Of a stretch of 64,000 nucleotides of DNA, positions 4,748 to 64,000 are shown one piece after another. The stretch is taken from NCBI RefSeq assembly GCF_033153115.1, contig NW_026889782.1:20026001-20090000 (forward strand), in the 5' to 3' direction. A program made the translations under genes and the position numbers. This DNA is from Saccostrea echinata. Taxonomy: Eukaryota. The notes beneath the pieces are model-generated. The model saw only the letters and a program-made list of their open reading frames with translations. It searched no databases and was not told the DNA's origin. Position 1 is the stretch's first letter. Every line of letters begins with the position of its first letter.

Positions 4748-7700
4748 CAGCAATCACCATACAACATATCAATGCATCGAAGTTGCGTAAGTCATACTGA
4801 ATATCATCCGTGGACGAAATTTCAAACTCGTCGTCTTTGAGCTTAGTATGTGTATTGTAAAACAGGCGTGCCTCAAATTCCTTTTTTACTCTCCAGGGAA
4901 TTTTAACATCAAATAAATATTCCTTTACTAGTAAAGGCATTTTAAGTCCTTTCTTGTAATCATCAATCAAGAATACGCTGGCATCCTTGCTAGATTTCTT
5001 CAGAAGAGTAAAATAGAATTGCCATTTCAGTACAGCCTAATATGAAACATTTTTGAGTAATTATGAAAATTTGGATATATCATAAACGTAAAATACGAAG
5101 TACAATTAAACTAAATACGTCATATGTTACTGTTATTATTTGCAGGTCAAATATCAACTTAATTTTGAGTTGTCAAATTAATGCTTAAAGAACTATATGT
5201 GTTCTGTTCAATTTTTGTTACCTTAAAGGAAACAATAGGGTATGATTTGACAGCACTTATAAGAATTTCTTCTTTAAATCCACCATTCCCAATGGATATA
5301 ACAACAGGCAACACCTTATGTCTACAATGTGCTGGTTTAAATGAAAAAAAAAATCTGTATCAGATTGTAAGAAAAACTGTGTCCATAGTGATATTAGTCT
5401 TTGTCTTATATTTTCTCTTTATTTTAAAGCATTAGTAATAAATGATTTATTTCTTATTTTAAGTGGTAAGAAAATAAATATCACATATTGTATTTCGTTC
5501 TCAACATATACCTTCAATCATGCGTTGAAAGTACTTAATTTCAGTCTCCTCCTCTTTGCAATCACCTCTTTCAAACGCATATTCACCCATTTTGATAAGT
5601 ATCTAAGAGATCATATTAAAGATATAAAACAGCACACTTAAAATTGCATATAAGGAGGAGGAGCATAATTTATACGGGAAATGTTTACTATGACATCCCA
5701 CAAAATTAATAATTCTTCCAAAAGTAAGAAAATAATTCCAATCTTAATTTTATTTATTGATTTCCTGTGTGTTGATTGAACAAGAACAAATTCAAGAAAA
5801 AGTTTACACATCGATAAATCTCTCAACCAGAACAAGTTTCTAGCTTTTATTGTAAAAAATTGAACCAAATCGTTACTTCTAGTCTGTTTTAGCTAAACGA
5901 TTACAGAAACTTTAAATTAAATAAAAACAATACTGACTACATACAGGACTGACAGACGGGAATGCTATGTCATTGTCAGATCACGAGTTAAATCTCTCAT
6001 AGGATATTATCGTCGTTCCTATTGCTAAGCAAATCAGCTCATTTCTCAGTAGCTGATAGAAAAGAGAAACGTGGCCCCTCAGACTCTTGCCTTATTAGCA
6101 TCAAATTCATATTTCTACATCCTATATTCTGTCCCGTTTTTAAACAAACCAGAGCAAATCATGGGTGCCGTCGGATTGCTACTTTCATTTTAGAGCGTTT
6201 GTCGTTAATGTCAACATGATCAAGGACGAATTCTTCTGAAGTCTACTTGTATTTAAGATATTCGTTGACTTAAACAATATTTGAAGAGGTTTTTTAAGTT
6301 TGTTTTATTAAATGTTTTGACAATTTAATTTAAACTTTATTGATGTTCATCTCGATTACGTTTCATTTCCACATCGGACATAAAGTATTCCTAGGCTGTA
6401 TACAGAAATAACGGATTGTATGGAGGCTTCAAAGAGAAATAATTTTAAAGCTTCGCAATTGGAATTATAAGAATTAAACGTTCTTTTTAAAAATTTTATC
6501 GATGTGTAAACTCTTGACATTTTACTCACAAACTTAACATAAAAGTGCTTCGCACTTTTATTTAGTTTGTGAGTAAAGTGTCAAGAGTTTATACATGGAT
6601 AAAATTTTCAAAACGAACGTTTAATCCTATAATGAAAAAAAAATGTGATTCTGTATAAAAGAAATAAAGAACACATCAAAACCTACTAATGTATGCAAAT
6701 TTATAGTTAAAACTAGCAAAGCGAGATAAAACAAATAACTTAAACTTTGCACTTGTCGACATGACGTCATTATGGTAAAATCGGACACTTTAGAGTGCAG
6801 TGAGGGGATCGTCTCCATTTTTTCAAAGTGAAAAATACATTTTATGATTAAATAAATAAATAATTAATTGAAGAGAATTAATTTACATGCGAAGTCTTTT
6901 TAATAATTTTATTCCTATATTTTCTCTACATTGTCTATTATGCAGCTGGTAAAGTGATACAGTCTACTGGCGTATATTTATATGAAAATACACGAACAGA
7001 TCTTAATTAAACGATTCATTGCAATGAAACATGATAAGCTTTTAAACATAAAACTAATAGGCATTATGAAGTTCAAAAAGTGCCGCGAACCTGCGAAAAT
7101 CTTGCAGATGAATTATTTATTTCAAATTTCATTGCAGTTGTCCAGAAAGAAATTCACTACGCGATTTTATAAAAATGTTTTTTTAACATTTAAATAGTAT
7201 TATCTGTCTAGGTTTGTTGCATTTGTTATAAACTACAAAAGATGTTGAAGATATTTCTGAATAAAACTCTTAATTTAAACTTGATTATGCCCTTGTGATA
7301 TTCAAGTTTATAGATGACCACATTACTATATGGGTATTAGCTAAATCACGTGATTGCTCCATCATGTGACCAGTTTAGATATAAAATCTAATCGTCTTCA
7401 ATATTTCGTTCTATCCATATTTTACTTGTCTAATATTAGCCCTTACTAAACAAAAATGAATTTTTTATCACCACCATCACCACCACAAAATAGGTGTTTT
7501 AAACGTTTTGGAATGCATTTTACGGTTCTTTTTGGCTTGTCAAGAAATTTTCTGGATAGGGAAAGGAATTTAGTTTTTTTTTGTTTTTGTTTTGACTGGG
7601 TTGGACCCCCCCCCCCCTCCCCGAAAAAAATACTTGATCCGCGCCTGTAACTACACTGCGTTAGCTTTCTCTTATTATGCCCTAAAGATTATAACAACAA

Positions 7701-10700
7701 TTATATTTTCTTCTCTATGCACATTCTACTGATAAATCATAAATATATGTTTCTAAACAGTGATAAATTTCTTAATATCATCATCTTACATGTATAGTAT
7801 CTTTGGTCGTTTTTTGATGAATGATCACTTTATCCTGAAAGAACAAAGTTTTTTCAACGATGTCCAAACACGGTAATCCGGTTTTCTCTACAAAAATTGC
7901 AAGTAGTATTTAATGAAAAGAAATGCCTTTACAATGAAATTATTCTGGTTTTTTTAAATGATATTTTATAACTCCTAACCAGTTTACATACTTGAAATAC
8001 TCCTGATATTGCCTAGAAGCTTGCTTCTGCTATCCATCCTCTCGTTTTTACTTTCTATTTGGTCTCTTTCTGATTCTGTATCTGGGTTATTTGCAAATAA
8101 AAGATACGGTATGACTTTTTCTTTTCTAAGTTTAACATCTCCCCCATCATCGAACCAAAGATCGACGAAAATCTAAAATAGGAAAAGCTTAATATATTGT
8201 AAGTATTCTGTAATCTTCGAAACATCGTACAAACGACATTATTGTACATTATACTGTTTTATTTTTAATAAATTTATTCCATTAATGCAGAATGACCTCT
8301 TAAACCTATGTTCACTTATCTGTTCAAAGGACTAACATAATTTCTGGATAGAATAATGTTTCCACTGGAAGCTGTTTCAAAATTAAGTGGCCTACCTTTT
8401 TGTTTAACGATTTTCCCAAATATCGTATTTAGAAGTAAGCTTAAATCTAGAATTCCATGTAGTATTATACGAAGGGCCTGCTGAGTATATTAAAGTACTT
8501 GAGAGAAAAATGATTAATAATAAATTTAAGAGCAATTTATATTTTTAAAAAAAATACTACAATGAGTTCTTATTAGTAAATGTCCTACGATCAACTATTT
8601 AAACAAATCATCAATATTGGTTACGAATCTCTATGCAAAGTGATTGCAGATTAAGAAAATTGGTATCTTTTAGCAATAAAGAGCCTTCATTGAAAAATAT
8701 AGTCTATCTAGTAGCTCAATCTGTCTTCAAATTAAAAACACATGTTTTTCTCGTATTCTAATGCAGGAATAATCAAAATTTGCCAACAATATGAAATAAG
8801 AATTCTCATGTTTGAAAGCATGTAAGGGACATAAATAGTTCAACGACGATTATAATGGTACAACCAGCATTTAATTTTCAGCAAGCAAGCAGAATGACCA
8901 GGTAGCAATCCTAGTTTTTCTTGATAACGATCAAGTACACAAAAGTGGCGTTCAAAAGTAATTAAGGCATGCAGCGTACTTTACATGCTTTTTGTTTGAA
9001 TGGTCAAAGACGAAAGGAGCTTATCCCTAATTAAAGCATTATGTGTATCTCTTCATTTAATTGTTTTTTTATCAATGACAATGACAATATGAAACCCTTA
9101 CAATTTCCTCAGGTTACATAAAACTTGATATGCAAACACAGATACGAAAGTTTGTCTATTGAAGGTTGATTAAGATAGATTGAAACGGATAAATTGTGAT
9201 CTCCTCTAAGAAACTAGCTGTTTTCAATATAATCTTAAAAAAACCCAAAATCAAAGGATTTGAAAACATCAATCAAATTTGAAGATATCTTACAGTAGTC
9301 AAATCTTACATAATAATACAGTTAAATCAGAGAAAAAACAGAGGTGAAATCAAGTGCCATGGAGAACTGTACATCCCCTGTCGACTGATCACACTGGCGG
9401 TGTGTCCCTTCTAATAAATAGACAATACGAAAAATCCGTGAGCAATTTGGTGTGGAAATTGTCGAAGGATCATGGCTATGCATGAGGGAGATAATCCTTA
9501 AGTTTGAAATAAATTTCTTAATTTTACCCCAGCATTTAAATATATATCCGTATTTTCAAGCTAGTACCGAAGTACTCAGCTAGTGGACTGTAGAGACTCT
9601 CGGGGACTAACAGTCCGACAGCAGAGTCGTCGACCCAGGGGTCATAATGTTAATCATATACGGTACTAATTTTGATGCACAAGATGCGCATTTCGATAAA
9701 TTATGTTTCTTCAGTAATAAATAGACAGAAACCACTCTTCAATATTATTCCATGCTCTTTTACGATATAACATTCAAGAAAAAGATGTTCAATTCACTCA
9801 ATGTGAGTTTTACAGAAACTGCAAGCTGGGGACTCCCATATCTTAAGTTTAATAAGATATGAATTTGTTGGAACTATTTTATGTAAAATTTGAAATTGTA
9901 CCCCTAAAGTTTTGATTCTTCATCAGGCCATTCAGGCAAAGTCATTAAATATCCATCCTCGTTTAATTCTAAATTTGAAGTACTTGTTCTTTTCTGTCTA
10001 TTGATAAGATATTATACATGTCTTTATATCCTTTCATATAAATATAAAACATCTTCACGGAACTGGGAATATTTGTTCTATATGAATAATCACATTCCTT
10101 TGGTTTTTGTTAAAAAATCTTACACTGCCTGTTTAAAACCAGAATATTCAACAAAATTTGTTTTTACACCGAGATTTTCAAAGGTGTCAAGGCTTTAAAA
10201 TTATTAATTAAGTCATGCAAGTCACTTATGAAAACGAAACCAGCATTGAAATGACTTTTAAGAAAGACAGAAGACTCTTCCATAGTGATTTTGGGATTAT
10301 ACCATGTGTTCTTGGAATATATTTGTATTTTTCTGTGGTTCTACAAAACATATGCTAAGCCCAATTCTTCAGGATTTCTATCCAAAAAGTGTTTGATATT
10401 TTCTTACATAAAATAGCAGTAAAGTCTGAACCCATAAACCAGAGAATTTTAATGTCTTTATGTAGTTGCGCTTGAAGTAATTTCTGATAAAATATAAAAC
10501 GGCTTCTTTTGTTATTGGTCCCTCTAAACTTGTCGATTCCCTTCAACGTAGTCTGGGTATATTATAATCTTTTAACCTAGTGTAAATACTATCATCTGTT
10601 TCAGCATTCTCTCTTTTTATATAAATTTTCATAGAATCTTTTTGTTTCATTTAAAATGTCCTCTTGATTGGATATCGTTCGTCCATCTTTTTTAGTAATA

Positions 10701-13700
10701 TTTGGAATTTGTATACTGATATAATTTCTAGATTTTAAACTTACAAAATACTTTGTCCGTTGTTCTCCTACATGTGACCGTGTCTACAAGTTCTTTTTGT
10801 GGATAAAGAGTAATAATTTTTATGCTTTTTTTAAGAAACAAAGCTGAAATGACATTTTTATAATTTACGTCTACCTTTGTTTTTCCGTCTCCGGCCTTGA
10901 TATATCCATGCATATCTGAAATCAGAAATACCTATTTATAGCTTCAAATACAATGTTTTAAAGGCTTAATAAATAAAATTGTTTTTACTAAAATTAAAAT
11001 AAATGCAGAGAATTTTCTCAATTTATGGTTTTCACTTTCTGTGTTTCTTATTTATCTATTTACGTATCATTTTTATGTTTTGTTTGTTTGTTTTTTGTAA
11101 GCCCTAAGCAACGCCTGTGAATCTACTTGTGATAATGCAGAACGAAATACATGCTATGTCAAACTTTAAAGAATGAAACTTGTTAAGACATCACTTGGTC
11201 GATTTTTCTACAGGAGTTTTGTTTCGTAATTTTTTTTTTCATAGATGGCACTTAAAATGCAATGTATTCCAAGATATCTTGGATATGGTCTTCATATCAT
11301 CACATTTTTGTTCAAATGACCTGTAGTACCTCCGGAAATAAAGATAAAAAAGCAAAACATCGATGAATAGAATAAAATGTAGTTTGTTAAGATCAACAAA
11401 ACCTATGTAGCTAACGTGTTCAATCTATTTATCTTGTCTCAAGATAATTTAACTTGTTATTTGGTCTTATTTTTCTTACCATCTTGGAGTTTCGGAAGAT
11501 GGGCAGGATAATAAGTAAACGTTGGCAAAAACTTCAGACACTTGAGATCTGTAATTTTCCATCCATTCCTAGCAAATGACGAGTCTTTATCCCATACCAC
11601 AGTAACTACGTTTCGTCCAGCGTTTACTTTGTAGTTGGTTATTTTGGAAATTTTTCCCCGTTTTCTTCCTGGATATGTAAATTAAAGATAACAAACATTA
11701 ATCAAGTCCATTGAAACAATACAAATCTGCTGCAAAACTAACACGGACCTCTTAAAAGACGTGAGATGGGCAGGTGCCATGGAGGAGGTTAGCATCGCCT
11801 GTCGACCGGTCGATTTCATATTGCCCCCCCCCCCCCAAGTCGCTGTATTCGCGATTTCAACATCATCTTTTACTAAAAATCCATTTTGGTAAAGTATCAA
11901 TGTCTATTTTTTTTATATTTTGCCCATCGTTGCCGTAATCTTTGATAGAATAAAAAATATTTATGAAATTATCGCATCAATTCAAAGATCGAGGTTTCCT
12001 AATTCTTGGCCTTTTTAAAATAAGTGATTTAAGGTCCTCATAATTAACTATCTTTATGTCACCAGAAATGATGTATCTAGCAGGACTATAGTTGAGGGAT
12101 GAAAACGAACTTGAACATGTAGGAGGATTGTCTCTGATGTTCGATATCTATGCACTGTAAGAGCTTCTTTTGTAATAAAAAAAATTGAAAGCAATAGTCA
12201 ATGTATATTTGAAGTACAAGGTGTGGATTTCAACTTAAAGAATGTTGGAACACAGACTGGTCCCTTTTATGATTAAGAATATCACTAATATTTATTTTTT
12301 CAATTGCTTTGTTGGTAAAATGGAGTTAAAGGAACAAACGGGGTTTGTGAGCAGTATCTTCTTCCGTAAAACGCGGCGGTTTAAAAGCCTATTGTTTGCA
12401 ATATCCATAACACACATCTAATCCTGTATGATACCGAGGAATCCAAATAGGGACTTTCTTTGACCTTTCAAATATTCCATTTCAAATTTAAAAGAAAAAA
12501 AAAACATAGTAAAGATTGGTTCAAATGTGATGAAGACCTGTCTATTTACATAAGGTAGTAGAGAGTCAAAAAGAGACATCGTATATAATATATTTATTGA
12601 AAGACCGATGTCCATGACTTCTCTTACGTCTTTGTGAGTTGTTAAAAAATTTCATCACATCCACATTACTACACTGTGGATTTGAAAGATTCCCAACACT
12701 ATCGACATTGGAGGGATACCGCCGTGCCGTTTCCTAATCCATATTCTTCTCGTTGTCGACAGAAAGATGTACTGCATGATAGGCAATTAGCATGATGGTA
12801 AATCTTATAAATGATATAAAAAGCATCAATTTTAAATAAGGAATGTGAATTTATAGAGCACCTTAAGGAAACTTACCATTGGAACTTCCAATTTCACTGA
12901 CATTTGCGCCTTTAAAAAGTCCAAGTGCTTGTACTTTATTTTTTGAAGCAAGTGCGGATCTAGGCTGATCTAATCTTTCACTGAAAATTATTATCATATG
13001 TATGATATCGTGAAAACATTTATACTCTTATTTTTCATGAAGTTAAAAGAATATCAATTATTTTTTCACATTAGTGCTTTTCTTATTATAATCAAACGTT
13101 TGTTCAACTGCAAGGATATATATATTTCATTCTTGTCCATAATGTTACAGACATGCTATTCTTTTTGGTAATAATTATCATACTGTCAAATGCGTACGTG
13201 AATTTTAAATATATACACGATGATCCAGTAAATGTAGAAAAATGAAATCAGTTCACACAGTTTTTACGAACGTTATAGGTGTAAATGATTTGCATATGCA
13301 AGCCAAGTCTGACGTAAAGCTTAATTAACATAAAAAAATAGGGATTTAGAATTTTTATGCCACACTGCTAAGTGTGTTTGATAACTCTTTTTAATATAGA
13401 CAATAACTGAGTAAATTTTTCAAAAATCAAAATAAGAATAAACGATTATGTACGAGCTTCATACACGTAAGTATAAACATTACGTATACGTATACAAGGA
13501 CTGCACAACCCAATCCGACTTTGCGCTAGATTTTATAAATTTTATAAGAATGTCATGAATAGGGATGACCTATTTTAATCAAATAACATGGTTTACCAAT
13601 TGTAAATCAATGACTTAAATGTATTCCGCCACTTTTCATTTATATGGATAATTATCTTGTGTCTGACTCCTTTGAATTATATTCAAATATAACTTTTAAA

Positions 13701-16700
13701 AAAATTGGACGTTGTTTAATTCGGATGTCCGACATTGCTTTTCAATCGATTTTAGAAACATATTTCTTGCTTTTAAAAGTATATTATTACTATCTATCGA
13801 GTAATTGATAGAAAATATATCAAAGAATAAAGACAGTCACTTTATATGCAAAACAATGATTTTTTATTAAGCTTTGACTTGTTTAATGAAAAATATAATC
13901 ATTTTCATCCAAACAATTTATTTCAAAGTTCATAGAATTTAAACCCTAGGTCATGAACACTATCTGCAAATTTTAGAAACCGCGATTTTACAAAGAAATA
14001 TAAGTTCAACCAATCGAAACCAAAACATTTTTATGGTATTCATAACAAATACTTTGGTATGAAACAAGTATTTCTAGTGCCATTTAGTTTGACGATAAAC
14101 GTCATTGTCCAGGAACTCTATGGACAGCCGTCGTATGCTTGATAATAATATGACTAAAAAGTGAAAAAAAGTGATAATTTTACTGTAATATACTTTCATC
14201 ACATATTTTTTTTTCTTTTTATCTAAGGAAAGGTAAAATAACCAACAATTAATCATCAGCACATGTCAGAAATCTAAAATTCGAACACGAAAAGTTAATT
14301 ATACACATTTTGTTTCTTATAATTAAAGTGTTCTTCATGATAATAGTATTTACTGAAAGTTTCAAAGATGTAAACTTGATATAGTCGTTAGCTTCTAGTC
14401 TTGTTCCTGTCTTTTTTCAGGCAAATTTCATTTCATAAGGGATAAATACCTTTCAGAAGGATCCACCATTCGATAGAATATCATGCCCATTTCTCCTTTA
14501 TCAGACATGTAACAATCACTACAAAGGTCATAATCTTTGTTTTCACACTTCCATCGCACGCCTCTAATTTTTCTTCCACATTCATCACATAATATTCTAT
14601 GATCAACACCTGTTAAATCCAAACTCTTGACAATGATAACATTGCTAAATCATTCCAGATATATAATTTTTTCCTACTGTATTTAAAAGAGATTGTAAAA
14701 AAACTAATGAGACAGAACGATACTGACAAAATAGGTTCCTGTAAGATCGCGTGAAAGGTGCAGCGTACGGATTTATGGCGTTCGGATTAACGTGGCGCCA
14801 TTTATCTAACTAATCTGGGTTATCATATAAATGTGTGTTTACCTATTTGACTGGAATCATAAAGTAAGATTGTTTTGTTTTTTGAAATAATTTCCTCATT
14901 CTTTTTATTATCCCACTGCACTGTGAGTTTCGAATCTTTCTCAGGCATTTTCTGACCACTATCTATTTCGGACCACCTGAAGTTTCGTCCTCTGTTCCTT
15001 GTCTGGTTGCTGTCCTCATCTGTTATATCTTGCAAAGTGTCCTGTAAAAATTGGAGTTGAAAAAATAGCTGATTTATGATATTATGATATAAGGATACAA
15101 AAACAATGGTTTTATAATATAAAATCTGTAAATAAAAAAGATTTATACGTGTTACATGCATAAGATGACCCCCAAAAAAAATCTGTATTGTGAAAGCCAG
15201 TTTCTCTCTCTTCGCCGCCTCTCCCTCCCCATCGTTAATTAACCCTTCTTACAGATTTTGTTAATTTGTATTGATGGCATTTCAAACATATGATGTTTTG
15301 TATCTTATCTTATATTGACAGAATCAGTGATTTGGTCGTCCCTAAATCAGGAAACCTTGTTCTTATCGATTATATTTAAGTAAGATTAACATAAACAGCT
15401 GATTAACCATTGTCACTTTTGACGTCACTCGATCACGTGGTAGCTGTCTAATTAACTTGGTTTTTTAATGCAGGGGTTTTCATTTGACTTAATAAGTATT
15501 GAGAAACCGCGATTTACCCGCAGTTCGTGTATTGATACCGAGTATTGTCAGTTTTATGGAACCTAACTTAATGTCCCAAGGAGCACTATTCCAAACAATC
15601 AATTCTGTATATCATTGAAATTTGTGTATCATTTTAGAAATCTTAACTTGTACACGTGCTGTGTGTTTTTCTTTGTGTGTTATGCTTCATGTTCTAAAAT
15701 TGCAGAAAAAGCAATCCAATTAAAAATATGGATAAAATATATTTTAGAAATAAGAATGCAGTTCAAAACTCTTCAATTTGATAACAAGGGTATTGAACAT
15801 AAGTTGCGTATTTCATATTTTTATTACTCTTTCATTGCACAGGGTGTACTGTCCTATGGCGGATGACAAAAAATCGGGGCCTTATCAGGGAATTGAAGAG
15901 TATTATTTCGAAATAAAAATATTAAATATAATAAGTGGGGCAAAATAATCATATTTTCAATTCATTATCTTTTATGTCTTCAATTAGAAAATTGCAAAGA
16001 ATGTTCCTAAATTTTTGGCTGTTCTCCGAGACTTTTAAATGGGGAAGTAATAAACGCAACAAATGAAAAATGGCAACGTTTGATGACGTTACGGCGCACC
16101 AGAGAGCAAAACAGTTATATCTTGATTGTATTAACGCTTTAAGAGACTTGAAGATAATTAGAATACAATTGGAATTGGCTTTTTTTAAAGAGAAGCCTTT
16201 TGGTCGAGTAATCAACTATTGGCAATATTGAAAGGTGCTGTCTTTGCAGATCGACGTAAAAAAGAGTACATGTTTAAATCAGCGAAAGTGATTATCAATC
16301 CCCTGTACAAGTTTTTATAAGGGCCCATGTGTGTGCTAAATTGGTCCTTCGATTTTTATTTATTTATTTATTTATTTTTTTTTTTGAGAAATGAAGGGAA
16401 AGTCGAGTGTGTGTATCAGTAAATTTCTCGGTTTTTATGTGGGGCTTATCCAACTTGAAAACACGAACGTGACAATGCTTTTGAAGTAATCATCCGTGCA
16501 CTGTACGTCGATACCGCACATAACATAAAATCCAAATTCCCTTGTTTGAGCTTAAATTCTTCAAAATTTGCTATATATATTGATGAAAAATGGAAAACAG
16601 TGTTGACTTTTTTTTTTACTCCAGACTACTTGTCCACAATTTTACCGGATATATATATCGAAAGGGGGTGTAGTTATTTGTGCAATGATATTTGAAAGTG

Positions 16701-19700
16701 CGATAAAATACTGTCGCTTTGCTATACTTGCACTGTAGCCTGTGTTAATTTTTTTTATCACATTTTATAAAAATATATAAAAATTTTATAAATAAGAAAT
16801 ATTCAATTTATGATTTTTTTTCCTCCCTCTTTTCTTACTTCAATTGAAATAACTGTGCCAACATATTGTTCTTTTTTCCCTTCTCTGTATTTTTCAACCA
16901 CTCGCATCCCCGGTTTTGCATTTTCTAATCAGAAAAAAAAATAAATTAATATGTTTTAAATGAATACATTCCTAGATGATATCCTGAAAAAATAACAAGT
17001 AAAAAAAAAAACACACGAACAAAATCGAATATGAAAAATGTATGTTTCATTTTAAAAAGTAGGTTCTCAAGAACACAGGTTGAAATTTTGCTAGCCTTAC
17101 CATTTGTAACAATCTGTAAATGTTCTTCATAATATTTTAGTCCTTTTCCTGGCGTCACACATTTCAAATCAACCCTTCCTTCTCTTCCAACTCTGAATCT
17201 TTCCTCACTCTTGCCATCTTCCCATTTCACGAGTGCATCGCAGTTGAATAAACTCGACTGTTCGTCATTTAATTCCTTTACTTTGCCTGTGCATAAAAGA
17301 AAAACAAATCTCTATAGGAAAAGAAAGCTTTTCAAATCTGACAAGAAAATATTTTATTGATTGATTGTACGGTGTTTCACTCCGATTCGAGAATTTAGCA
17401 CATAGATAGAGACTTCACCGTATACCGGTTAAGGGCTTCAAATTTAAAGCTATGCACGGCATTCCTGACACGGTATTTTTAAGGTCTCATCCGAAACATT
17501 CGTGACCCTCACCTTTGATACCGTGTGCTTGCCGAAGGAACAATCACTATGGTATCAATATTTGTCATCTCCCTCGGGAGATGACACATCAAATTTGAAA
17601 CCTGGAAATGAAGTTCTAGTGTAAGCTACCATTGATAAACTGGTGGTCTGGCAAATGTGATCTGATACTGTCTTGATTTTGAATATAGAGATGTAAACAA
17701 TGAGCGCCATGTCTTGTTATTATTAAAGAAAATGGGCCATCTTTTAGAGAGACTGTTTGGGATGCATCAAGGGTAAGAGAGGAAAGCTAACTTCTTCAAA
17801 ATACACTGTATTAAAATAAGACATACCACAGAGTCTGATCCATCGGTTCAAATTTGAATATTTTACGAGAAAAACACTTTAATGGTAACCGAACAACAAA
17901 GCTTTATGATACAAGTGATGGCTTCAATTTTTCAATCGTCAACTCCCCTTACTTATTAAGCAATATTCCTTTATCAACTGCATGTGGGGCTTTTGTTTCG
18001 CGGTTGATTCGCTACGCAAGCGCATGCTCTACTTATAAACACTTTTTAAAACGATGCAAGCTATTGGCAAACAAGTTGATGAAAGTTGATGAACAGTCTC
18101 GTTTGAAGTCATCATTTCGTAAGTTCTATGCTCGATACAATGACCTTATCAGCAAATACAATGTATTATTAGGTCAAATGCTGACTGACTTTTTTCATAC
18201 TAATGCCTAGGACATTATTTACACACTGAACTATCCACGGATTTTCTTGTTTTTACTCGATCATTACAAGGAGCACAAGGCGGGTGCGACCACTGGGTAG
18301 GGATGCTCACTCCTCCATGGCACCTGATCCCACCTCTGATGTTTTGGAGGTCCGTGTTTGCTCTGTTCCTGGATTGTCATTGGTCATTTGCAAAACTATT
18401 TTGTTAAAAAACATTCTGATTGTACACACAAGTACGCGGGTATGTTAAGGTTACACCCAGAGATATCCTACTTGCCTTCACAATATGGCGTCATAGTAAG
18501 CTGTATGACGTGAACTATAGAAATAATGATTTCTTAATATCTATCTTTAAAGTTTAATTTCAGGTCCAAGAAAAGAACGGAATCATTCAAAACATAACAT
18601 AAACTAAATCTTGTCGTTTTTGGGTGGTATAAATAGCTAATTATTTAGCACGGGGGTTAAATACCAAACCCATGACGTCATAACCATTGATCAAATATTT
18701 GCCGAGTGAAATGAAATTCATGTAAACAAATATATGAAATGGGAGTTTTAAGGCATATACCATGAATGTTATGTGTGATTCATAAGGAATTAAAGATTAA
18801 GAATCAGGTACGCTGATATATTCTTATCATGTTTTCTTATAATGAACATAGTCAGTGCTTTGAAATCCCAATCAGCCTTTCCTCTCTCGTTCTATAACAA
18901 CAAGGATGCAAAAGTTCAACACTACGCCGCATACTTTGAAATATAATTTTTGTTTGTATCGAAAGCTTGTATTCTATAGTACTTGGAAAGTGCTGCTAGA
19001 ATCGTGTGGTTAACATGAATTGATAAAAATTCCTTGATCGTATGTATAAAATGTAAAAATTTTGGTAAGGTTTCATGCGAAACTTTGGAATATTTTTTTC
19101 TGTGTCAGGAGAGTAGGATTCTAGCAGCACTTTTCATGGCCCAGTGATGTTTTTACATAATTATTTTCACTAAAAGAAATGAATTATCTCCGGGGTAGTG
19201 TTGAACTTTTCACTTTTTCATTAAGGCGATTTTTCTATTTATAGACGTCACGTGATGACGTCGTAGTGGAGTGCTTCTTTTAGCCTAAGACTCAATGACG
19301 TCTATACAATGGATAATAATAGTAAATGATTTATCTATGGTTTTTCCGATTTATCAATGTTACATTTTACGAAAAAAGTCTAAATTCGCCGAAATATGAT
19401 CTGGGTACTGCCTTAACATACCTGCGTACTCTGAAGTTAACATTTAAAAGATGCTTGAGTTGCTGATTGACAATATCTATGTGGTTTTTGGAGACCAGGT
19501 CTTCCAACAATCTATTGGATTCCATGGGTACCAATTGCGCCCCGTTATTAGCAGAACTTTTTTTATATTCATATGAAGCAGAATTTGTCCAGAATTTGTG
19601 AAAAGAAGAAAACACTTGCTGTGGCATTCAACTCGACATTTAGATATATCGACGACGTATTGTCAATTAACAATGGCTATTTCCATTCTTATGTCGATAC

Positions 19701-29062: not shown

Positions 29063-29093
<31 letters not shown>

Positions 29094-44027: not shown

Positions 44028-44344
44028 GGTCTGACGACATGTTGCTCGAATACCTGTTTTGTATCTCTTCGTAATATACCACAAATTAATCATAATAATC
44101 ATTGTCTTGTGATTTTAAAGTGTTTTTTAAATGTTTAAGTAGGTAAGACACCATAAAAATTGTGATATTTGCAATGTTAGTGATTTCCAATAGGATTATA
44201 TATGAAATAGCATCCTCCGGTATCTTGCTCAAATGCCTGGTAAGGTACCTAAATTTTTTGTGAGGAATCTTGCTTAAGTATCAATACTTCAATGAAAACT
44301 TCTTGGAAAAAATTATATATTGTTAAGGAACATGTCGTCTGACC
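44028..44344. mobile_element. Kolobok-type MITE, copy 1
   Basis: TTAA-GGTCTGACGACATG ... CATGTCGTCTGACC-TTAA. Confidence 0.8.
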
Positions 44345-51100: not shown

Positions 51101-54100
51101 AGATTATTTTTGTCTTACGATTCGATATTTACCATTTTACGGATCATAACCAGTTTTGGACCGAGCAATTTTGACATGGAAAACATATGGAGTATTCGAA
51201 TGCTCAATATGATGAATCCTGCGACAAGCAGCACCTTTGATGCGTTAATATAGAGACTTCCCTCTCCCAGTTGCATTAGCATACCACTTGTATAGGTAAT
51301 CACAGACAACCAGTCAAGATAATTCCAAGGGTCAGTAAAATACTGCGACTTCCTTCGCCTAATTACGGCAACAATAACCTTTAAAGATAAACCGTCTAAT
51401 ACAATTATACCAGTATTACTAAAGCTAGATATCAATCGAAGTTTTATCAGACCTAAGTGTCATGCATTATTAAAGCACCACAAAAAAGTTACTAATACGA
51501 TACATATTCCATGCTAAAATTTAATATAAAGTGAGCTTTGTTCTTTATCGTTAAAGAATTATGGAAACGAATGAAGAGTTTTAAACAAAATATAACACTA
51601 AATGAAAAGATATGAAAATTATCCTTCAGTTTGTATAGCCAGAATGCATATTAAAGGCAATGTTTGTTTTCAATTTAAGCAATCCTTAAGCTTGCTTTTC
51701 TTCCAAAAAAGTTGGTGAAAATAATGGACAAAATGTCATAATTTCAATTATATATACATGAAAAACTTCATTATACAGAATATTTCTTGCGCGGGTAAAT
51801 TTTAATTACAATGCAAAATTTCGTTTACAAACATATTTTGCCTTTTTCCAAGCACACAGCAAGTACACTAGGACACAATTACTTCATTTATTTAATAAAT
51901 AAATGTTGTACTAAACATATGCAACAGAACAATTTTTGAGCAACATTTATATAAAAGTGCATTTTTTTCTGAAATAAAGAACGATAATTAGCTCAATGAT
52001 AATAAATTGGATATGCAATAATTGACAAATTCGTTCAGAAGTACCTGCTTCATTTCGTCAAGGAAAAAACTAGCCATCCAAAGAATGAGAAACATGTCCG
52101 TGTTAGAAATCTCTCTACCAAAGTCAAAAAGGAGCATATATGCATACCCTGTCTGTAGACTAAAGAGACTCAGCTGAAAATATAACATACCCTGTCTGCA
52201 GACTAAAGAGACTCAGCTGAAAATATAATTTTAAACTGTGTTTCCTATGTATGCATTAAAGTTCTGTAATAGCTTATTATTCAAATATCTTTAGGACGGA
52301 AGTTTAGAAAAACACATGAATCCAATTTAAAAAATTACAAAACAACAACATTGGATAATATTATATTTCAGCAGTAATCTTAACTTTAACTGAAAATAGT
52401 AATGCAATGTTTGTTTTTATTTATTTCTGTGAATTCAACATATTTTAACGTTGCATAAGCTACAACATTTTATCAAAACGTAGAGAGGTATCCCATTTTA
52501 AGTGATAGAATCAATTAAAAAACATGAAGTCAAGCCAAAGATTCTAAACAAACAAAGAAAGAAAAAATACTTTAAAGACAAAACAATAATAATAATAATA
52601 AAACAAAACAAACAAACAACCAACCAAACAAAAAAAAGAGATTATGTGATACGTTTGCTCTGCAAAACTAACACCAGTCATTGATGGATGGAAAATATAA
52701 AAGAGCAATTGTCGTTAAAAAATAACGAAAGAGGAAATACTTTTTTCATATATTAAGTAAAGGATAAGGTGTATTAATTAGAAATTTCTAGACGAATTTA
52801 ATCCTGATGTACTCTTAATATTTGGAGAAGTACCCTTTACCCTTAAATAGCAAAACTCCAGCTAATCTTAATCAAATGATTCACATTTTCTAAAATGTAC
52901 CTTTTATCAGGAAAAAATATATACATCACTTACCACGTTCAGACAGACCTTCATGAATGGAATTTCATATTGTTTGTACAACCTTAAAATAATAAATAGA
53001 ATATATAATCACGCTCTCATGAATTCTTATCTGAATCTACTAAAACAAATTTACTTGACAAAAAAGAGATATGTATATGTATAATGGTTACCATTTAAGA
53101 GGTTTGTTGTCCATTGTTTTCATCAGAGGTGGTAAAAGTATGAAATGAAAAATCGCCAATAGCAAAAAGCCAAATATCTGCAAAATAAAAAAATAAAAGC
53201 AAATTGAACTGTGTACTTCCAAATCAGTAATAAATTACAATATAGAGAGTATAGATGCTTTTAATTTGATACAAAAAAATCAAAAAATATAACTTTACTA
53301 ACTCGCTTCACTGTAAGCTTTTCTCCCCCGTACCACATTAGGTTAAGAATGTTTTTCACAACTTCGTTGTCAAGAAATACTTTGTTCTGGGTTCGAATAC
53401 CATCCGTAAGGTAACCATGATTGAGAAGAAGTCTGCCAGAATGCTGAATGTTTGCTTTTGCTTCTTTCTTATCGTTTTCTTCCTTTTCTTTCTTTTTATT
53501 TTCCTTTTTTCGCAATTTAATATCCTTTTGTTTATCGGTTTCATTAACGCAGCTGATGATTCGAAGCGCTTGCTGGGTAAATTTTCTGTATAAAAAATGC
53601 ATGTAAATCAAAAACTCAAAATTTTCACGTTAATAAAAGGCTGTACTTTCTGCTACCCTCTGTAGCACCAATTGATATATTGCTATTCATATGTTAATGT
53701 TTGAGGTTTTTTTCTTATTCTTATAAGTTTTTAATGCTTTGGAATATGTTTAGAAGACTATTTATCAGCAGAGGGAAGTGATACCTTATAGGCGCAACTT
53801 CAGTTCTGTAACCAGTTTCTTTTTTTAATGAATATCTTATCGGTTAGCATCATAATGTGAAACTTAATATTAGACAGCAAGTTTTCTTTTTATGAATCAA
53901 GTGTGACAGAGAAGATGTTTGTCAAATGGTTTTTATGATTATAATTTTCAGGAAAAAATTAAAAACATATAAAAATGGATTCTCAGTTTAATACTTTTTT
54001 CTTTGATTTTTTTTCATTTCATACCTGATTTCCATATTCAAAAATGTCTTGAATTTGTTTTACGTAAAAACCATATCATCTGAAATTATTTATCAGATTC

Positions 54101-54793
54101 CTTTCTATCTTTATCAAATTTGCTACCATTGAATATTTACTTTATCATAATTTGAAATATTTGTTTATCCGCTTCATTTGTCCTCCAATCATCTTCAGCT
54201 TCTTGTAGAATTACACAACCAACAAGAATAAAGTGAATACGCACCTGTCGAAAGAAAAAAAACATGTTTATAATGTATTACCTCTTATACAAACTATATT
54301 GTCAACCCACAAACCGCTGTCTGACGTATATGAGGTTTTCCCTTGAAAATAAACGCTTTTCGTTAATTAAAAAACAGACTGTACTTCGACACGATGCCGT
54401 TAAGTGTAAATTACAGGCCATCAGATTTATGCAAATTTCAAAGAATTGATTAATATATTGTTTACTCAGCAAATGTCTTCTTTTTTATTGGCAACTCTAT
54501 ATGAGTGAAAATTTCTCAAATTGGATGAAAAACAACACAAGACACGAACATTTTGTAGGAAACAGGTCCAATCACTAAAATTCTTTATTGTGATGTTCAA
54601 AAAGAATTAACAAGCTTCTGCTAAGGAACTTTACTAAATAAATTCATTTTCAACGATCAATACAAGATAAACATTCAATAACTTACACATCCTGTTTCAA
54701 CGAATTGCTTCGCGCCGGTGTAAAATTTTTCTTTCAACAGAGCTAGAAAAATCAGTCCAAACAGTCCGGAGATTGAGACTTTAAGTTTACCAT
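48136..54793 (-). CDS. TRPM-like MHR4 + transmembrane S1-S6 + TRP helix exons of gene B
   Basis: LIFLALLKE; FTQQALRIISCV; VVKNILNLMWYG; YEIPFMKV; FLDEMKQ (S2); YFTDPWNYLDW (S3); IRILHMFSMSKLLGPKLVMIRKM (S4 and S4-S5 linker); YWLLFEIELD (pore); paired pore-loop Cys; ILLLYLLIAMYSCTFSEV (S6); FYW*QLQ..LEEF (TRP box). Confidence 0.92.
49165..49461 (-). mobile_element. tRNA-derived SINE, near full length (Deu/Nin/Meta-like core)
   Basis: tRNA-like head; core GGTCCTTC.GATGAGACC..GGCACGAAAAAGATCCCTCACTGCTCAA; tail TATGAGTGAAAAATTCTCGAG. Confidence 0.85.
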
Positions 54794-56292
54794 CTACAAA
54801 CAAAGTAATATATATGTATAAACTCATAACTGATTATGTAAAAAAAAAATACCCACAAGATTCAATTCAAAAAATGCTTGTACAAAAAGATTTAAAACCA
54901 AAGGATATGTGTAGAGAAATATTGTTATAAACTTACCCTTCCAAACAGGTGGCAGGTAAGCATTTCTGGTAGATTCTTGTAAATCTCTCCATAGACCTTT
55001 CTCGAACTCAAACGTCATTTTCTATAAAATATTTGTCATAGATTCTATTTTTCATACCTGTCATAATGTGTTTCCTTTTTTCAGAAATCCACGTAAATAA
55101 CAATATGCAATGCATGCTCGCATATATTGCAATTTGTGATTTAGACTACCTCCCCCTTCATTCTATTGCCGTAAAATATCGGTAAATTAATATCCCCTGA
55201 GGAAATTTAGCAATTATATTGAAACTCACAAACCGCTATTAGCCACATTTTTGTTAATCAAATATTACCGAGATACATAAAGTTTTCATTTGAATAAAGC
55301 TTTTTCGGTAAATTAAAAGTCAGACCTGTTCTTCGACAAAATGCCGTGAATTTTACATGATTATTCATCAGATATATGCAAATTTCAAAGAATTGTTGCA
55401 TACTCAGCTATGTTAAGGAAGGAAATGAAATATGCGATCTTTGTACATTCTTAATACGTATTATTTTTAAAAACCTTTGCACAAAGTACTTGTAAATACG
55501 TAGGAAATGTAATATTGATATCCATAATGGACAGGTTTGTGGCTTACTCAGTACCAGTTACATCGCATGTATCAGCTCTGTGTCACGTGACTTGTATAAA
55601 ATAGAATTGTTCAGCTGAATGTAGAAAATGAGGTAGTGCAAGGGCATACCCATGTTTTTGGAGAAAAAGATGATACATATTAAAACAGATTTACATCGGC
55701 TTCCTGAAAAGTGCTGGGAGCTAAAAATCTTGTGTCATAAATGACGTCACTAGCCTTGACTTGACGCACACAAGTGATCCAGAGGAGTGGATCCATTGGT
55801 TTAATAATTACAAAAATGCTTAAATAAATATAAAACCAACGCCGATGTTTAAATCAAATCAATAAAATTAAAAGGAAATAATTTATTTAAAATAATAATA
55901 ATGTAGATTATCAATTTATCTAGGTGCTATAGAGCTGCACATAGAGAGAGAATGTAAAGAATATCGCTTACACCGTAAGTGAATATCTGATTAACCTCAA
56001 AAGTGCAGGGGCATAGATTAGATTGTTTGAGCTGAATATGGAATAGCAATTGCTTATCTAATAACTCGGCAGTATTGTTATCAAGTGTTGTGATTTTACA
56101 TGCTTTTATAAATAATTGATAAAATAAATGAATGCAAGTTGTTATTTACGCATTATCATGTGGTTAAATAGATTTTCGTCGCTTGTTAAATTTTTAATGA
56201 CGTCACAGTGAAACTTCCCATACGGTGCATCACAGATATGAACTCATATCATTAATGTCGCCCATATTATTGACGTCTCTATATGAATGTTT

Positions 56293-56508
56293 TTGTTTTG
56301 TTTGTTTATTGTTTAACGTTCCTCTCGAGAATTTTTCATCCTATGGAGACGCCACCAATTGCCAGTGGAGAGCTACAAATTTTGACCTATACTCGGCACT
56401 TAGGGCCATTGAGCAGTGAGGGATCTTTTTTGTGCTAGCACCTACTGCGACAGGGGACCTCAGTTTATACGGTCTCATCCGAAGGACCGGTCTCCATGTC
56501 CCACAGTG
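56293..56508 (-). mobile_element. tRNA-derived SINE, 5'-truncated
   Basis: Same core and tail as 46533-46812. Confidence 0.8.
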
Positions 56509-57392
56509 AAAAAATCTTGAATGTACCGTTAAACCATAATGTTTTTGTATTTTGTTAGATAAAAGACATCTATATATATCTACATGTAAGTTGCAATTCT
56601 TTCTTTTATCATAAATACTATCTGTTACTTACTTTTTCAAAAATGTGTTCAATGGAGTGGTGATCGAAAAAGTCTTTGATTGTGTCCTTTGGAATTTTCC
56701 ATTTCCCTGTTTTAAGAAGGTACATGCACAGGGCATTGGGGTATATATCCTATGTATATGAATAATATTGAGGTAAATATGTGGTTTTTCATATCTTTTA
56801 CATATGAAGTAAATTTAAAGTTTATCTCAAAATTAAACATCATACCTTAACTTTGATTTTTGCAAAATATGATAAAACTGAACAAATATTTTTTTTTTTT
56901 TAAAATGGAAATTTTGGAGAAGAGAAAAACGTATACATAAACATGTCTAGAAAAAGATGTCAATAAGAATATATCATTCTGACCAAAACTAGATTTGAAA
57001 GTATCCAATTGATAGCGCAGTGATTTATTATTATCATACTAAAAAAAAAACTGCAAAATACCTTAAATTTCTTTGGAGTTCTTTCTACCATGCACACTAA
57101 AAGGAAAACGTGCATAAATCAATACACGGGATTTTGCAGATCAAAATAAAATAACTAAATTTAGTTTTAAATCAGAATCGAATTGATATAAACCTATAAA
57201 GAATATCATGCTCCAATATTTAGTCATTTAAATAAGATCTATATAATGGCTCTATACGTTGAATAAAATGTCTAAGAAATGCAAAATTGAGACATGTCAA
57301 TCGAGACTATGATTTGTGTTATTTTTTTTTTCATAGGAAGTGAATTATCTAAGACTAGAAACAAAGGAAGTGATTCCTTTTGAAGGGAAAAA

Positions 57393-57521
57393 NNNNNNNN
57401 NNNNNNNNNNNNNNNNNNNNNNNNNNNNNNNNNNNNNNNNNNNNNNNNNNNNNNNNNNNNNNNNNNNNNNNNNNNNNNNNNNNNNNNNNNNNNNNNNNNN
57501 NNNNNNNNNNNNNNNNNNNNN
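57393..57521. other. Assembly gap
   Basis: Run of N. Confidence 1.
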
Positions 57522-59324
57522 ATATTAATCAATATTCGAAAAAAAAAAAACAACAACAACATTAAAGTAGATTTCATTATTCTTTAGGCCATTTTCTTAC
57601 TGGCTAGTCCGTATTTGATAATCTTTTTAGGAATACTAACCAGCTATTACCATACAGCATATTATTGCATCGAATTCTCGAATGTCATGCTGAATATCCT
57701 CTGTAGATTGAATTTCAGCCTCGTCGTCTCTGAGTTTATCTCGTCTATTGTAAAACAGGCGTGCTTCAATTTCCCTTTTTAACTGCCAAGGAATCTTGGC
57801 ATCAAATAAATAATCCATTGCTAATAAAGGCGGGGTACGTTCATCTTCGAAAGTTTGATTTTGTATAAGTCAATCAGGGTTACGGTTGCATCCTTGCTAG
57901 ATTTCTTCAGAAGAAAAGAAAGGACAAAATTGGATTATAAAATTGATATTGTAATGAAGTACAGTGAAACGGATCTAACCTGGACAGCACACAAGTAGCA
58001 AAGGGCGGGTGTGACCGGTCTACAAAGGATGCACTCCTCCATGGCACCTGATCTCACCTCTGATGTTTTTTAGAGGTCCGTGTTTGCTCTGCTCCATTGT
58101 TTAATGGACTTTTGAGATTGATTACTCTTCGTTATCTTCATATTTCATTACACAATACTTAAATCAATTGAATTTACTGAAAGGGACGAAAAGTTAAGAT
58201 CGTATTAAACAAGCTTTCGGAATACACAACATACAGATTAAACAAGTTTTACTGTACAAAATATTTTTGAAATAAGCCATATTTAAATAATTAATCATAC
58301 AAAACTTAATCAAGTGATAAAAAATCAAAGTAGAATAGGTTCTATATTCTATAATACTGTTATTAGTTACAAGTGAACTATCAGTCTTATTTTGAATATC
58401 ATAGTAAATGCTGAATGAACCATTTATATTTTTTTTTACCTTTATGGACACAATAGGGATTGATCCGACAACTGCATTTGCAATAATTTGTTCCTTGAAG
58501 CCGCCATTTCCAATGGATATAATAACAGGCAGTAATCTATGTCCACAGTGGGCTGGTTTATATAATTTTAAGCTTAAATAAGTTCTGTTATTTTATTGGT
58601 TTGTTCATTCGATGATTTTGTGTTAAAAAAATATTTTCTGAATGTGAAAAGACATGATATGTCACAAAGTTATTTTAAACTTTACAAATACCTTCGATCA
58701 TGCGTTGGAAATATTCAATTTCAGTCTCTTTGCCTCTCGAATCACCTCTTTCAAACGCATATTCACCCATTCTTATTAATATCTAGACAAAGGTATTAGC
58801 TTTCTCATTATCATTTCTGGATCACAATAGTACATGTAATTATATCCTTTCTTTGATGTACCTTTGTACATATGTTTTTCAATTGAATCATTGAATAGAT
58901 TTCTATAGATCATAATCCTACTTGTATAGTTTCTTTGGACGTCTTCTGATGAATGATCACTTTATCCCGATAGAACAACGTTCTCTCAGCGATGTCCAAA
59001 CATGGCAGTCTTGTTTTCTCTGAATATATAGTAAGAAGTACTTCATGAAGGAACGGTTCATCAATATTAAATTTTATCTTCTGTTTCGATTCTTTGTTGT
59101 TGTTGTTTTGGCTATTTCATGCATTTTTTTCATTCAGAATCATTTTACATTCCTGAAATACGTTTAATATTGTTAAGAAGCCAGCTTCTCTTCTCCAACC
59201 GGTCCGTCTTGTGTCCTCTTTGTTTTCTTTTCGATTCTTTATCAGGGTTACTTGCAAACAGAAGATAAAGCGTGGCTTTTTCTTCTTTAAGTTGAACTTT
59301 ATTCCCATCATCGAACCAAAGATG

Positions 59325-59643
59325 AATAGAAATCTATCATAGAATGATATACATAAGTTGTATCAATGGAAATCTAACATAGAATGATATAAATATATTG
59401 AATCAATATAAAATTATCATAGAATGAGATAAATATATTGTATCAGTGGAAATCTAACATAGAATATGATAAATGTATTGTATCAATTGAAATCTAACAT
59501 AGAATGAGATAGGTGTATTGTATCAATGGAAATTTAGCATTGGATGAGATACATATATTGTATCAATAGAAATCTAACATAGGATTAGATAAATGTATTG
59601 TATCAATAGAAATCTATCATAGTATGAGATAAATATATTGTAT
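59325..59643. repeat. 40-bp minisatellite, ~8 copies, built on a splice acceptor
   Basis: Unit AATAGAAATCTAACATAGAATGAGATAAATATATTGTATC. Confidence 0.9.
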
Positions 59644-60950: not shown

Positions 60951-61734
60951 TTAACAACTCTTTAAAACATCTCTTATGAGGTATGTTTTTAACACTGAAA
61001 GACCAAAACAAACATTGGATTTTTTAAAGATGAATATTTAGTTATAATTTTGCCAGAGAAAATGATAAAATATGTATGTATTGCAGAAAGGAGGCTTAAT
61101 ACTTTAAAAGTTGCCATTTAAATGCATTAAATATCAATATCTAATAAAACATGTCATGAAAGGTCAGAAAGAAAAAAAAATTTAAAAATATTGATGAAGT
61201 TAAAAAAAGTAATATTTTACAAATTTACGGATAGAATCCTAAAAGTCAATTTACAAATTACATAATAGAGCAAATATCATACAAATGTATTTATTCCACA
61301 TATTTTAGTGGAATTTAAGAGAAATTTCGATTTTCAAATGTGGACCTATCTGTATCGAAATTAAAATGATCGCAACCAGAAATAAAGAAAATGGAAAATA
61401 GAACAATCACACAAGATTAATAGGTTGCTTGAATATTATAATTAACGTTTACCTTTGTTTTTCCATCACCCGCCTTGATATATCCATTCATACCTGAAAC
61501 ATAAAAAAATTACGATTTTTAATTCCTTTAATTCTATTCAAAGGTTAAAATTGGCTTAAATAAATGATTTGTTGATTGAAAAAGAGTAAAATTAAAATTC
61601 AAGCACTTATCTGATGTTTTTTTTCTCATATTATTTATTCAATACATAGGTTTTGGTGTTTTTATTCTTTTTTTTTTAATCCTATATTTTATTTTTAAAA
61701 TTTTTGTGTTTTTTCCTTTTCTTTAGGTTCTTTC

Positions 61735-63010: not shown

Positions 63011-63588
63011 TCCTTTTCTTTAGTTTTCTTTCTATTTTTGCTATTGTCTTTGGTCATAATATTTTAAGATATCAGTATTTCCGTACTTGCTTGTAAGATA
63101 TATAAAGATTAAAAGGGATTTACGGATCTTTTATAATATATAAAGTAAATTATGTTTAGGACAATGAAAAAATATGTATAAAGGTGTGAATGCGCTTTCC
63201 GTTAAAAGCTACCTTGAATTTTCTACTAGGGAAAATGTTCAAAAAGCAAAAGAATTAAGCTGAAAAAAATTATATATTTTTTGTTTTTTGTTCGTTTTAT
63301 ATGTTTATTTATTTGTTTGGTTTTGATGTTCTTTTACACCTGGAATTTTCAACCAGGGAAAAAGTTTAAGGACAGCAGTTTTAAGTTTTAAAAAAACTAA
63401 TTTTGTGTTCACTCTATAGAATCTTTCTTGGTTTTTTTTCCATTACCGTCTTGTAGTTTCGGAAGATGAGCAGGATAATAACTAAAGGTTGGAAAAATTT
63501 CAAGCACTTGAGATCTGTAATTTTCCATCCGCTGCTGGCGTATGGAGACTCTTTGTCCCATTCCACAGTGACCATATTTCGCCCAGCG

Positions 63589-63829
63589 TTTACTTTGTAG
63601 TTGGTAATTTTGGAAATTGTCCCCGATGTACTCGCTGTAAATGTTATCAAGAGCATCAATTAAAAATATGTGCCTTTTACTTTGTATTTGGTAATTTTTG
63701 TAAATTGTCCCCGATATGAAAATGTTATCAAAAGCATCAATTAAAAAATATGTGCCTTTAACTTTGTAGTTGGTAATTTTGGAAAGTTTTCCCATTGTGT
63801 TTTGTAGATTATATCAAAAGCATCAATTA
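63589..63829. repeat. ~80-87-bp tandem triplication spanning an exon start
   Basis: Three copies of ACTTTGTAGTTGGTAATTTTGGAAA..ATCAAAAGCATCAATTA. Confidence 0.85.
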
Positions 63830-64000
63830 TAAAAGAAAAAGGAATGCATGCCTTATCTTTTCAACGAGCACTTTGAAGATGCTTACCACTTGAACGTCCG
63901 GTTTCGCGGACGTCTGCGCCTTGAAAAAGTCCAAGTGCTTGAATTTTGTTTTTTAAAGCAAGGTATGATCTAGGGTGAGCTAATCTTTCTCTAAAATTAC

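Follow-up and report, generated by a model that had tools for sequence, protein, structure and literature searches.

The stretch of DNA analysed here, referred to as the window, comprises 64,000 nucleotides of Saccostrea echinata (contig NW_026889782.1, positions 20,026,001 to 20,090,000; G000:C33:20026001-20090000 in our numbering), and is part of a 923-Mb assembly. It has an A+T content of 69% and a sole assembly gap at 57393-57521, and it carries two paralogous genes, A and B, in which exons for MZM modules, with the domain order MIB/HERC2-ZZ-MIB/HERC2, are followed by exons for a TRPM-like channel. Both genes, and all the features treated, lie on the minus strand. The analysis also took in flanking DNA, 50 kb on the left and 40 kb on the right, and four paralogs, A, B, C and D, were read, loci E, F, G and H being known from match coordinates alone. 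From the genomic sequence we consider it likely that one transcription unit joins two MZM modules, a 41-bp exon, a cytosolic region and a TRPM-type channel, and we infer the corresponding splicing at the mRNA level. The main exons are listed below, with the MIB/HERC2 domains of the two modules numbered MIB1 to MIB4; the protein of similar name is always called Mind bomb 1.

Gene A
26108..26329, minus strand: MIB1, the first MIB/HERC2-like domain, in one exon (conserved in A, B, C and D; fold match)
24598..24769, minus strand: ZZ1, with 8/8 zinc ligands (Pfam ZZ, E 1.7e-8, above the cut-off)
17101..21547, minus strand: MIB2, exons 21547-21438 and 17286-17101 (Pfam MIB_HERC2, E 3e-6; kept in B, C and D)
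14843..16924, minus strand: MIB3, MIB/HERC2-like, exons 16924-16839 and 14951-14843 (conserved coding blocks against B, C and D)
14450..14609, minus strand: ZZ2, with a degenerate second zinc site (Pfam ZZ, E 8.4e-9)
11480..12980, minus strand: MIB4, exons 12980-12877 and 11668-11480 (Pfam MIB_HERC2, E 0.019)
10875..10915, minus strand: 41-bp linking exon, phase 1 to phase 0, with an AG acceptor and pyrimidine tract and a GT donor
4748..8172, minus strand: cytosolic exons 8172-7992, 7887-7790, 5602-5512, 5331-5222 and 4997-4748 (conserved against B, C and D)

Gene B
63447..63634, minus strand: last MIB/HERC2 exon, with a 1-bp deletion near 63493 (DNA alignment with A)
61453..61493, minus strand: 41-bp linking exon, of the same length and phases as in A
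57641..59333, minus strand: cytosolic exons 59333-59162, 59019-58922, 58782-58692, 58552-58440 and 57904-57641 (paralog comparison)
57062..57096, minus strand: 35-bp exon, phase 1 to phase 0 (conserved with A and C, AG and GT sites)
52928..56749, minus strand: helical cytosolic and pre-S1 exons (conserved against A, C and D)
49690..52173, minus strand: transmembrane core (Ion_trans and TRPM2 matches)
48248..48448, minus strand: TRP-helix exon with a TGA at 48403-48401 (A, C and D read Ser)

The linking exon and the family of loci

The MIB4 donor of gene A at 11480 has the form G|GTAAGA and lies in phase 1, with no stop codon ahead of it. The junctions run 11480 > 10915-10875 > 8172 in gene A and 63447 > 61493-61453 > 59333 in gene B, and direct reading of the splice sites bore out the claim of an earlier note on this DNA that, in both genes, the last MIB exon ends in phase 1 and is followed by a phase-compatible 41-bp exon; the sequence motifs which that note had quoted were all recovered on the minus strand where it had placed them. 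The length of 41 bp and both flanking phases are identical across A, B, C and D, although D is about 40-60% identical in protein, its exons showing 30-66% identity to those of A or B. When the last MIB exon is read through, the stops that are met differ in position between the copies and, given also the absence of a stop ahead of the donor, a gene consisting of MZM modules alone would have no conserved terminal exon. Comparison of A with B, C and D revealed no further conserved coding block between the MZM and channel halves, and no ankyrin, REP or RING exon, in agreement with the architecture lacking ankyrin and RING parts that had been proposed.

Fifteen GT-AG exons of gene A, extending from 26329 to 4748, yield 702 codons with zero stops over the MZM/channel boundary when joined, the exons having been placed by blocks conserved with C and by frame-keeping GT-AG sites and the joining having been done in order to count stops. 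Wherever the script placed a junction in both A and C (19 of 21), the intron phases agree; for the remaining two it placed none in C, and one of these, 5222>4997, was fixed, along with the choice made for it in A, by direct reading of the sequence.

Searches of the same genome with single exons or an exon profile revealed the order MIB1-ZZ1-MIB2-ZZ2-MIB4-N-terminal exons-transmembrane (TM) exons, on one strand, at at least eight loci on four contigs. They were located by their exon matches as follows.

C33:20.01-20.05 Mb: locus A
C33:20.08-20.10 Mb: locus B
C33:20.70-20.73 Mb: locus C
C33:21.48-21.53 Mb: locus D
C6:12.53-12.56 Mb: family locus
C6:12.84-12.93 Mb: family locus
C29:8.27-8.30 Mb: family locus
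C48:2.83-2.89 Mb: family locus

Identity of the TM exon to that of B ranges from 39% to 76% over the loci, and the retention of order and strand despite such divergence and dispersal is not what is expected for unrelated neighbouring genes. Among the sequence-based arguments, this genome census provides the strongest evidence for a fusion, and the recurrence of one exon order at dispersed loci also upholds the proposal of a lineage-expanded channel family. A further copy at C81:476667-499450 scored identically to C33:20704777-20727768 (locus C) for all exons searched; an uncollapsed haplotig is the probable explanation, and the copy should not be counted as an extra gene.

Frames are open in every exon read of A, C and D. 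The ratio of non-synonymous to synonymous substitution (dN/dS), determined from blocks picked for their conservation and therefore biased downward, is 0.20 for the MZM exons and 0.16 for the channel exons between A and C, and 0.28 and 0.26, respectively, between A and B, where dS is about 0.6. Both halves are under similar purifying selection.

Three other regions of the genome carry parts of this exon set. The region C32:7494223-7517744 (plus strand) holds a TRPM-like paralog, in which the N-terminal exon 7891-7787 (44%) and the TM exon (52%) both find a match, with no ZZ or MIB match in the census; it may represent an MZM-less relative, useful for dating the fusion. Groups of ZZ and MIB/HERC2-like exons that have no TRPM exon close by occur at C9:50309234-50357731 and C54:55080434-55081294 (both plus strand), the former with at least five ZZ exons in 50 kb, and these may represent either the genuine Mind bomb genes or another family with MZM modules.

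Recognition modules, cytosolic region and channel

The two modules of gene A together amount to 446 residues, about 220 each, and the order in each is MIB/HERC2-ZZ-MIB/HERC2. Their presence upstream in gene A, as first suggested, is supported by the Pfam matches of the ZZ exons and by the conserved MIB exons, the MIB/HERC2 assignments being tentative and ZZ2 degenerate. The best PDB match of ZZ1 is to residues 71-121 of Mind bomb 1 (4xi6; E 1.8e-13) and that of ZZ2 is to the ZZ of the Mind bomb 1 MZM (E 3.2e-8); among the PDB matches of both exons the Mind bomb 1 ZZ (4xi6, 4xi7) outranks HERC2, KCMF1 and p62. The alignment of ZZ2 with Mind bomb 1 has no counterpart for the second Cys of 'CAEC', nor for either His. 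All four copies, A to D, keep the first zinc site of ZZ2; in its second CxxC the second Cys is gone, as are both His, such that, by sequence, this domain is a conserved 'half-ZZ'.

Partial matches to Pfam MIB_HERC2 occur at 17.2 kb, 11.6 kb and 63.5 kb (E 3e-6, 0.019 and 0.043), all of them under the cut-off, as these domains are divided between exons; for MIB2 the score is 27.5 bits against a cut-off of 33.5 bits, a single exon carrying half the domain. MIB3 has no Pfam match of its own, and its splice phases are equal in A and C. The MIB1 exon gave no sequence-level match in Pfam or PDB, as a single sequence or as a profile against PDB. Its AlphaFold model (pLDDT 77) has as best PDB fold the MZM-REP structure of Mind bomb 1 (4xi7), a weak match (E 0.05, 31% identity, TM 0.55). 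An exon at about 26.8 kb contains a Met in A only.

Between the linking exon and S1 extends a divergent cytosolic region of about 450 residues. In gene B its helical and pre-S1 exons lie at about 56749-56633, 55021-54937, 54793-54687, 54244-54141, 53432-53291 and 52984-52934, and the 35-bp exon was found by paralog comparison, the copy of A being located just to the left of the window. Ten cytosolic exons, searched singly as queries of 24-60 amino acids, yielded no Pfam match, LSDAT_euk included, even at E<=10, and for one cytosolic exon, the pre-S1 exon and the S2-S3 exon no match was found in PDB. The motifs that had led to the description of these exons as MHR1/2-like are present, and the resemblance itself (G.I...G, LPVVISIGNGG) has gained no statistical support and stands as a tentative likeness, not a finding. 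Similarly, the exon with FEARL exists, its true start lying further upstream than supposed, at 4997, and 'ICCMVIAG' was correct as far as ...ICCMVIA, the exon closing there, at 4748, in phase 1 with a split codon, and the final G coming from read-through into the intron. After 'VIA' the 35-bp exon reads V-F/C-M..., without a SLOG-type GG.G loop. For the exon ending at 4748, a start at a 'CTAG|TA' acceptor (exon 4928-4746) was rejected: the donor upstream of it lies in phase 0 in each of the four copies, and the acceptor that fits is the phase-0 one at 4997 (26531 in C). A weak donor at 5257 was also rejected because it is not conserved between the copies.

The channel core of gene B is encoded in exons for S2-S3 (52173-52045), S3-S5 (51378-51133), S5-pore (50506-50332) and pore-S6 (49858-about 49690). 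The S3-S5 exon, at 51.3 kb, matches Pfam Ion_trans with E 1.2e-5 (25.1 bits against a 25-bit cut-off), and its best PDB matches, about 45, are all TRPM proteins, with TRPM2 at E 1.8e-12 and TRPM8, TRPM4 and TRPM5 also represented. The alignment with TRPM2 covers the S3 motif WN.LD and the S4-S5 linker LGPK..(I/V)R(K/R)M. By eye, the conserved exons of A, C and D also contain ...SKFYWSQLQTDFLE... (TRP helix) and ...GYWMLFGEL... (FGE-type pore), and an E...Q pair is visible in S2. Searching a protein cluster atlas with the TM exon returned generic channel clusters alone. It is the TM region alone that is demonstrably TRPM-like in sequence.

The pre-S1, S2-S3, S3-S5, pore, S6 and TRP-helix exons of gene A were found 10-18 kb to the left of the window and the two MZM modules of gene B 0.4-5.5 kb to its right. 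Each gene therefore has both halves, and the full architecture, which the earlier note had described as a composite (N-terminus from A, channel from B), is not composite. Downstream of the channel part of gene B, five or six similar exons rich in serine and glutamate (...SESEESL...) were observed in the open reading frame (ORF) list; no NUDT9H-like or kinase-like ORF was seen in the same interval.

39735..44861, minus strand: serine-rich repeated exons 3' of the channel part of gene B

Gene B exhibits three lesions. The frameshift noticed earlier in its last MIB exon was confirmed as a 1-bp deletion by alignment with A; it adjoins a T5 run, two reading frames are visible, and it is present in the assembly. 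Exon 57904-57641, the homolog of 4997-4748 in A, carries a frameshift near 57870, one base off the open frame of A and C. Finally, TCA is changed to TGA at 48403-48401, giving ...YW*QLQ... against ...YWSQLQ... in A, C and D, a substitution that is unlikely to be a homopolymer artefact. Exons for the S1-S6 channel are present in gene B, as had been claimed; the gene that they belong to is probably a recently disabled copy, a pseudogene. The A-B dN/dS is still 0.27, indicating that the decay is recent or that part of the lesions stem from assembly errors. Gene A, being intact, serves better as an exemplar.

The assembly gap also falls within gene B.

57393..57521, no strand: assembly gap in an intron of gene B, between the exon ending at 57641 and exon 57096-57062

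The donor at 57641 and the acceptor of exon 57096-57062 are both in phase 1, and the exon order on either side of the gap is that of A and C. The corresponding introns, 4.8 kb long in A and 1.6 kb in C, yielded no other conserved coding block and, given this and its intronic position, the gap interrupts no known exon. In the intron upstream of the last MIB exon of gene B (63650-63813, minus strand), two additional partial copies of the first 36-38 bp of that exon (...ISKITNYKV...-like) lie in tandem at 63676-63713 and 63758-63793; none occurs in A.

The probable fusion, its alternatives and its possible function

The proposal that MZM modules and a TRPM-like channel form one architecture is supported by the continuous frame in A, by the phases in A to D, by purifying selection and by the eight or more loci. 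Several points weigh against it. The fusion is read from genomic DNA, a look-up of sequencing runs for 5750-11749 having listed no RNA run, and the 5' end of the gene and its start codon were not found. An in-frame ATG inside the 41-bp exon is kept in all four copies read, such that an MZM-less isoform, or a separate channel gene, could start there. Agreement of phases between paralogs is partly inherited rather than independent, and the dN/dS values carry the bias mentioned above. Protein databases also provided little: a profile built from exon 4928-4746 together with the corresponding exon of B, searched against 1.8 billion proteins, returned one 142-amino acid genomic ORF fragment, and a word-indexed protein search with the last MIB exon, in which a length filter leaves out full-length proteins, gave no candidate. 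Moreover, the cytosolic region has no demonstrated melastatin (SLOG/MHR) match in the short exon-by-exon queries.

The conserved ATG and the purely genomic nature of the link between the halves would both suit an MZM-only adaptor gene neighbouring a TRPM-like channel gene that starts in the linker (M-H/N-G-Y-I-K...), the pair having been co-duplicated repeatedly; the linker motif G-Y-I-K-x-G may match the start of the melastatin region in other TRPMs. However, the strong acceptor and pyrimidine tract, seen in all copies, mark the 41-bp exon as internal, the MZM part has neither a conserved terminal exon nor a stop, and the frame is continuous over the junction in every copy read. Unrelated neighbours would not be expected to keep order and strand at eight or more loci on four contigs, and we regard this arrangement as improbable. 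The same ATG is also compatible with the production of both forms, a full fusion from an upstream promoter and an MZM-less channel via an internal promoter or the linker ATG itself, and the C32 locus, which matches N-terminal and TM exons with no MZM match, points in this direction; such dual output is possible, if rather doubtful. That the locus is an accident of exon shuffling, non-functional and eroding as in gene B, could be argued from the three disabling lesions of that gene, but all exons of A, C and D that were read have an open frame, both halves show a dN/dS of about 0.2, the values between A and B are low enough for the decay of B to be recent, and the family has at least eight members. 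We consider such a decaying locus very improbable.

If the fusion is accepted, the protein would consist, from N- to C-terminus, of a short leader, two MZM modules, the 41-bp linker, the cytosolic region of about 450 residues, an S1-S6 pore and a TRP helix. Assembling as a tetramer, as other TRPMs do, it would display eight MZM modules in the cytosol. According to the title of PDB 4xi7, the MZM of Mind bomb 1 binds the N-box in the tail of Jagged1. Other ZZ fingers among the matches have N-terminal peptides as ligands, to judge by the PDB titles: histone H3 or SUMO1 for HERC2, and degrons for p62, KCMF1 and PRT1. By analogy, the modules of the channel would recognise short peptide motifs in the cytoplasmic tails of partner proteins, and such binding might tether the channel to its partners or be coupled to gating. 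Peptide binding, tetramer formation and gating are functions that we infer from these comparisons. Tentatively, and with considerable reserve, one may envisage true fusions, expanded in bivalves, in which the MZM part docks on tails of membrane proteins, Notch-ligand-like or other, thereby gating or positioning the TRP pore. The S3 WN..D motif forms part of the TRPM Ca2+ site and its retention, with that of the S2 E...Q pair seen by eye, suggests that this site is kept; Ca2+-dependent gating has probably been retained.

Relation to known systems, and repeats in the window

Of the known TRPMs, those of the beta type (TRPM2/TRPM8/TRPM4/TRPM5) provide the best PDB matches to the channel part, the S3-S5 exon aligning with zebrafish and Nematostella TRPM2 with E about 2e-12, and the FGE-type pore motif and the W-containing TRP helix after S6, both seen by eye, may also be shared. 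The cytosolic region, in contrast to that of TRPMs, lacks an LSDAT_euk/MHR match exon by exon and has not kept the GG.G-type loop of SLOG. Accessory domains of TRPMs, NUDT9H and the alpha-kinase, are C-terminal enzymes which define channel gating. The genes described here resemble these chanzymes (TRPM2-NUDT9H and TRPM6/7-alpha-kinase) in fusing a TRPM pore to a module of another protein family, and differ in that the module is N-terminal and of a protein- or peptide-recognition type, those of the chanzymes being C-terminal enzymes or ligand sensors. Downstream lie serine-rich repeated exons, and no NUDT9H or kinase exon of the kind in TRPM2 and TRPM6/7 was seen there. At the N-terminus, where most TRPMs carry a Cys-rich pre-MHR segment (PMC13143021), there are two MZM modules.

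The MZM of Mind bomb 1 comprises about 220 residues. Mind bomb 1/2 (MZM-REP-ANK-RING) share with the present genes the contiguous MIB/HERC2-ZZ-MIB/HERC2 order, and the ZZ and first MIB exons are closest to Mind bomb 1. Here, unlike in Mind bomb 1/2, the MZM is duplicated in tandem, with ZZ2 minus one zinc site, and its C-terminal partner is an ion channel; REP, ankyrin and RING exons are absent, which implies that there would be no ligase activity.

An expansion of TRPM2-like genes in bivalves was already known, with 21 'TRPM2' copies in Crassostrea gigas (PMC8004665), some of which may carry an MZM N-terminus that has gone unnoticed. Full-text literature searches detected no paper in which TRPM and MIB_HERC2 occur together, and wider terms gave nothing relevant. 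A 2026 study of gains and losses of TRPM domains over metazoans (PMC13143021) contains no mention of MIB, HERC2, Mind bomb or zinc fingers, and surveys of the TRP channels of scallop (PMC8539334), oyster (PMC8004665), cephalopods (PMC13402157) and abalone (PMC12980990) are equally silent on MIB/HERC2, Mind bomb and zinc fingers. The MZM-channel arrangement may, nevertheless, already be present in automatic annotation (InterPro-style tables).

Should the fusion prove true, an N-terminal pair of substrate-recognition modules from E3 ligases would constitute a solution different from the C-terminal enzymes of other TRPMs, and with eight modules per tetramer such a cation channel could sense particular protein tails or use them as anchors. 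The history of the TRPMs (PMC13143021) would be extended by a domain gain, and part of the unexplained bivalve 'TRPM2-like' expansion would acquire a testable function. The MZM would then be seen to work outside ubiquitin ligases and, if the modules do dock on protein tails, a TRP channel would be regulated through direct peptide recognition, a mode not described so far.

The window also contains two families of interspersed repeats. One is represented by a unit of about 325 bp at 549-875, which occurs in more than 40 copies of about 91% identity on many contigs. The other, with the translation ...HCGTWRPVLRMRPYK..., recurs within introns of A, B and D. Further positions of the two families in the window are 2325-2608, 46541-46811, 49167-49462, 56300-56483 and 62927-63002.

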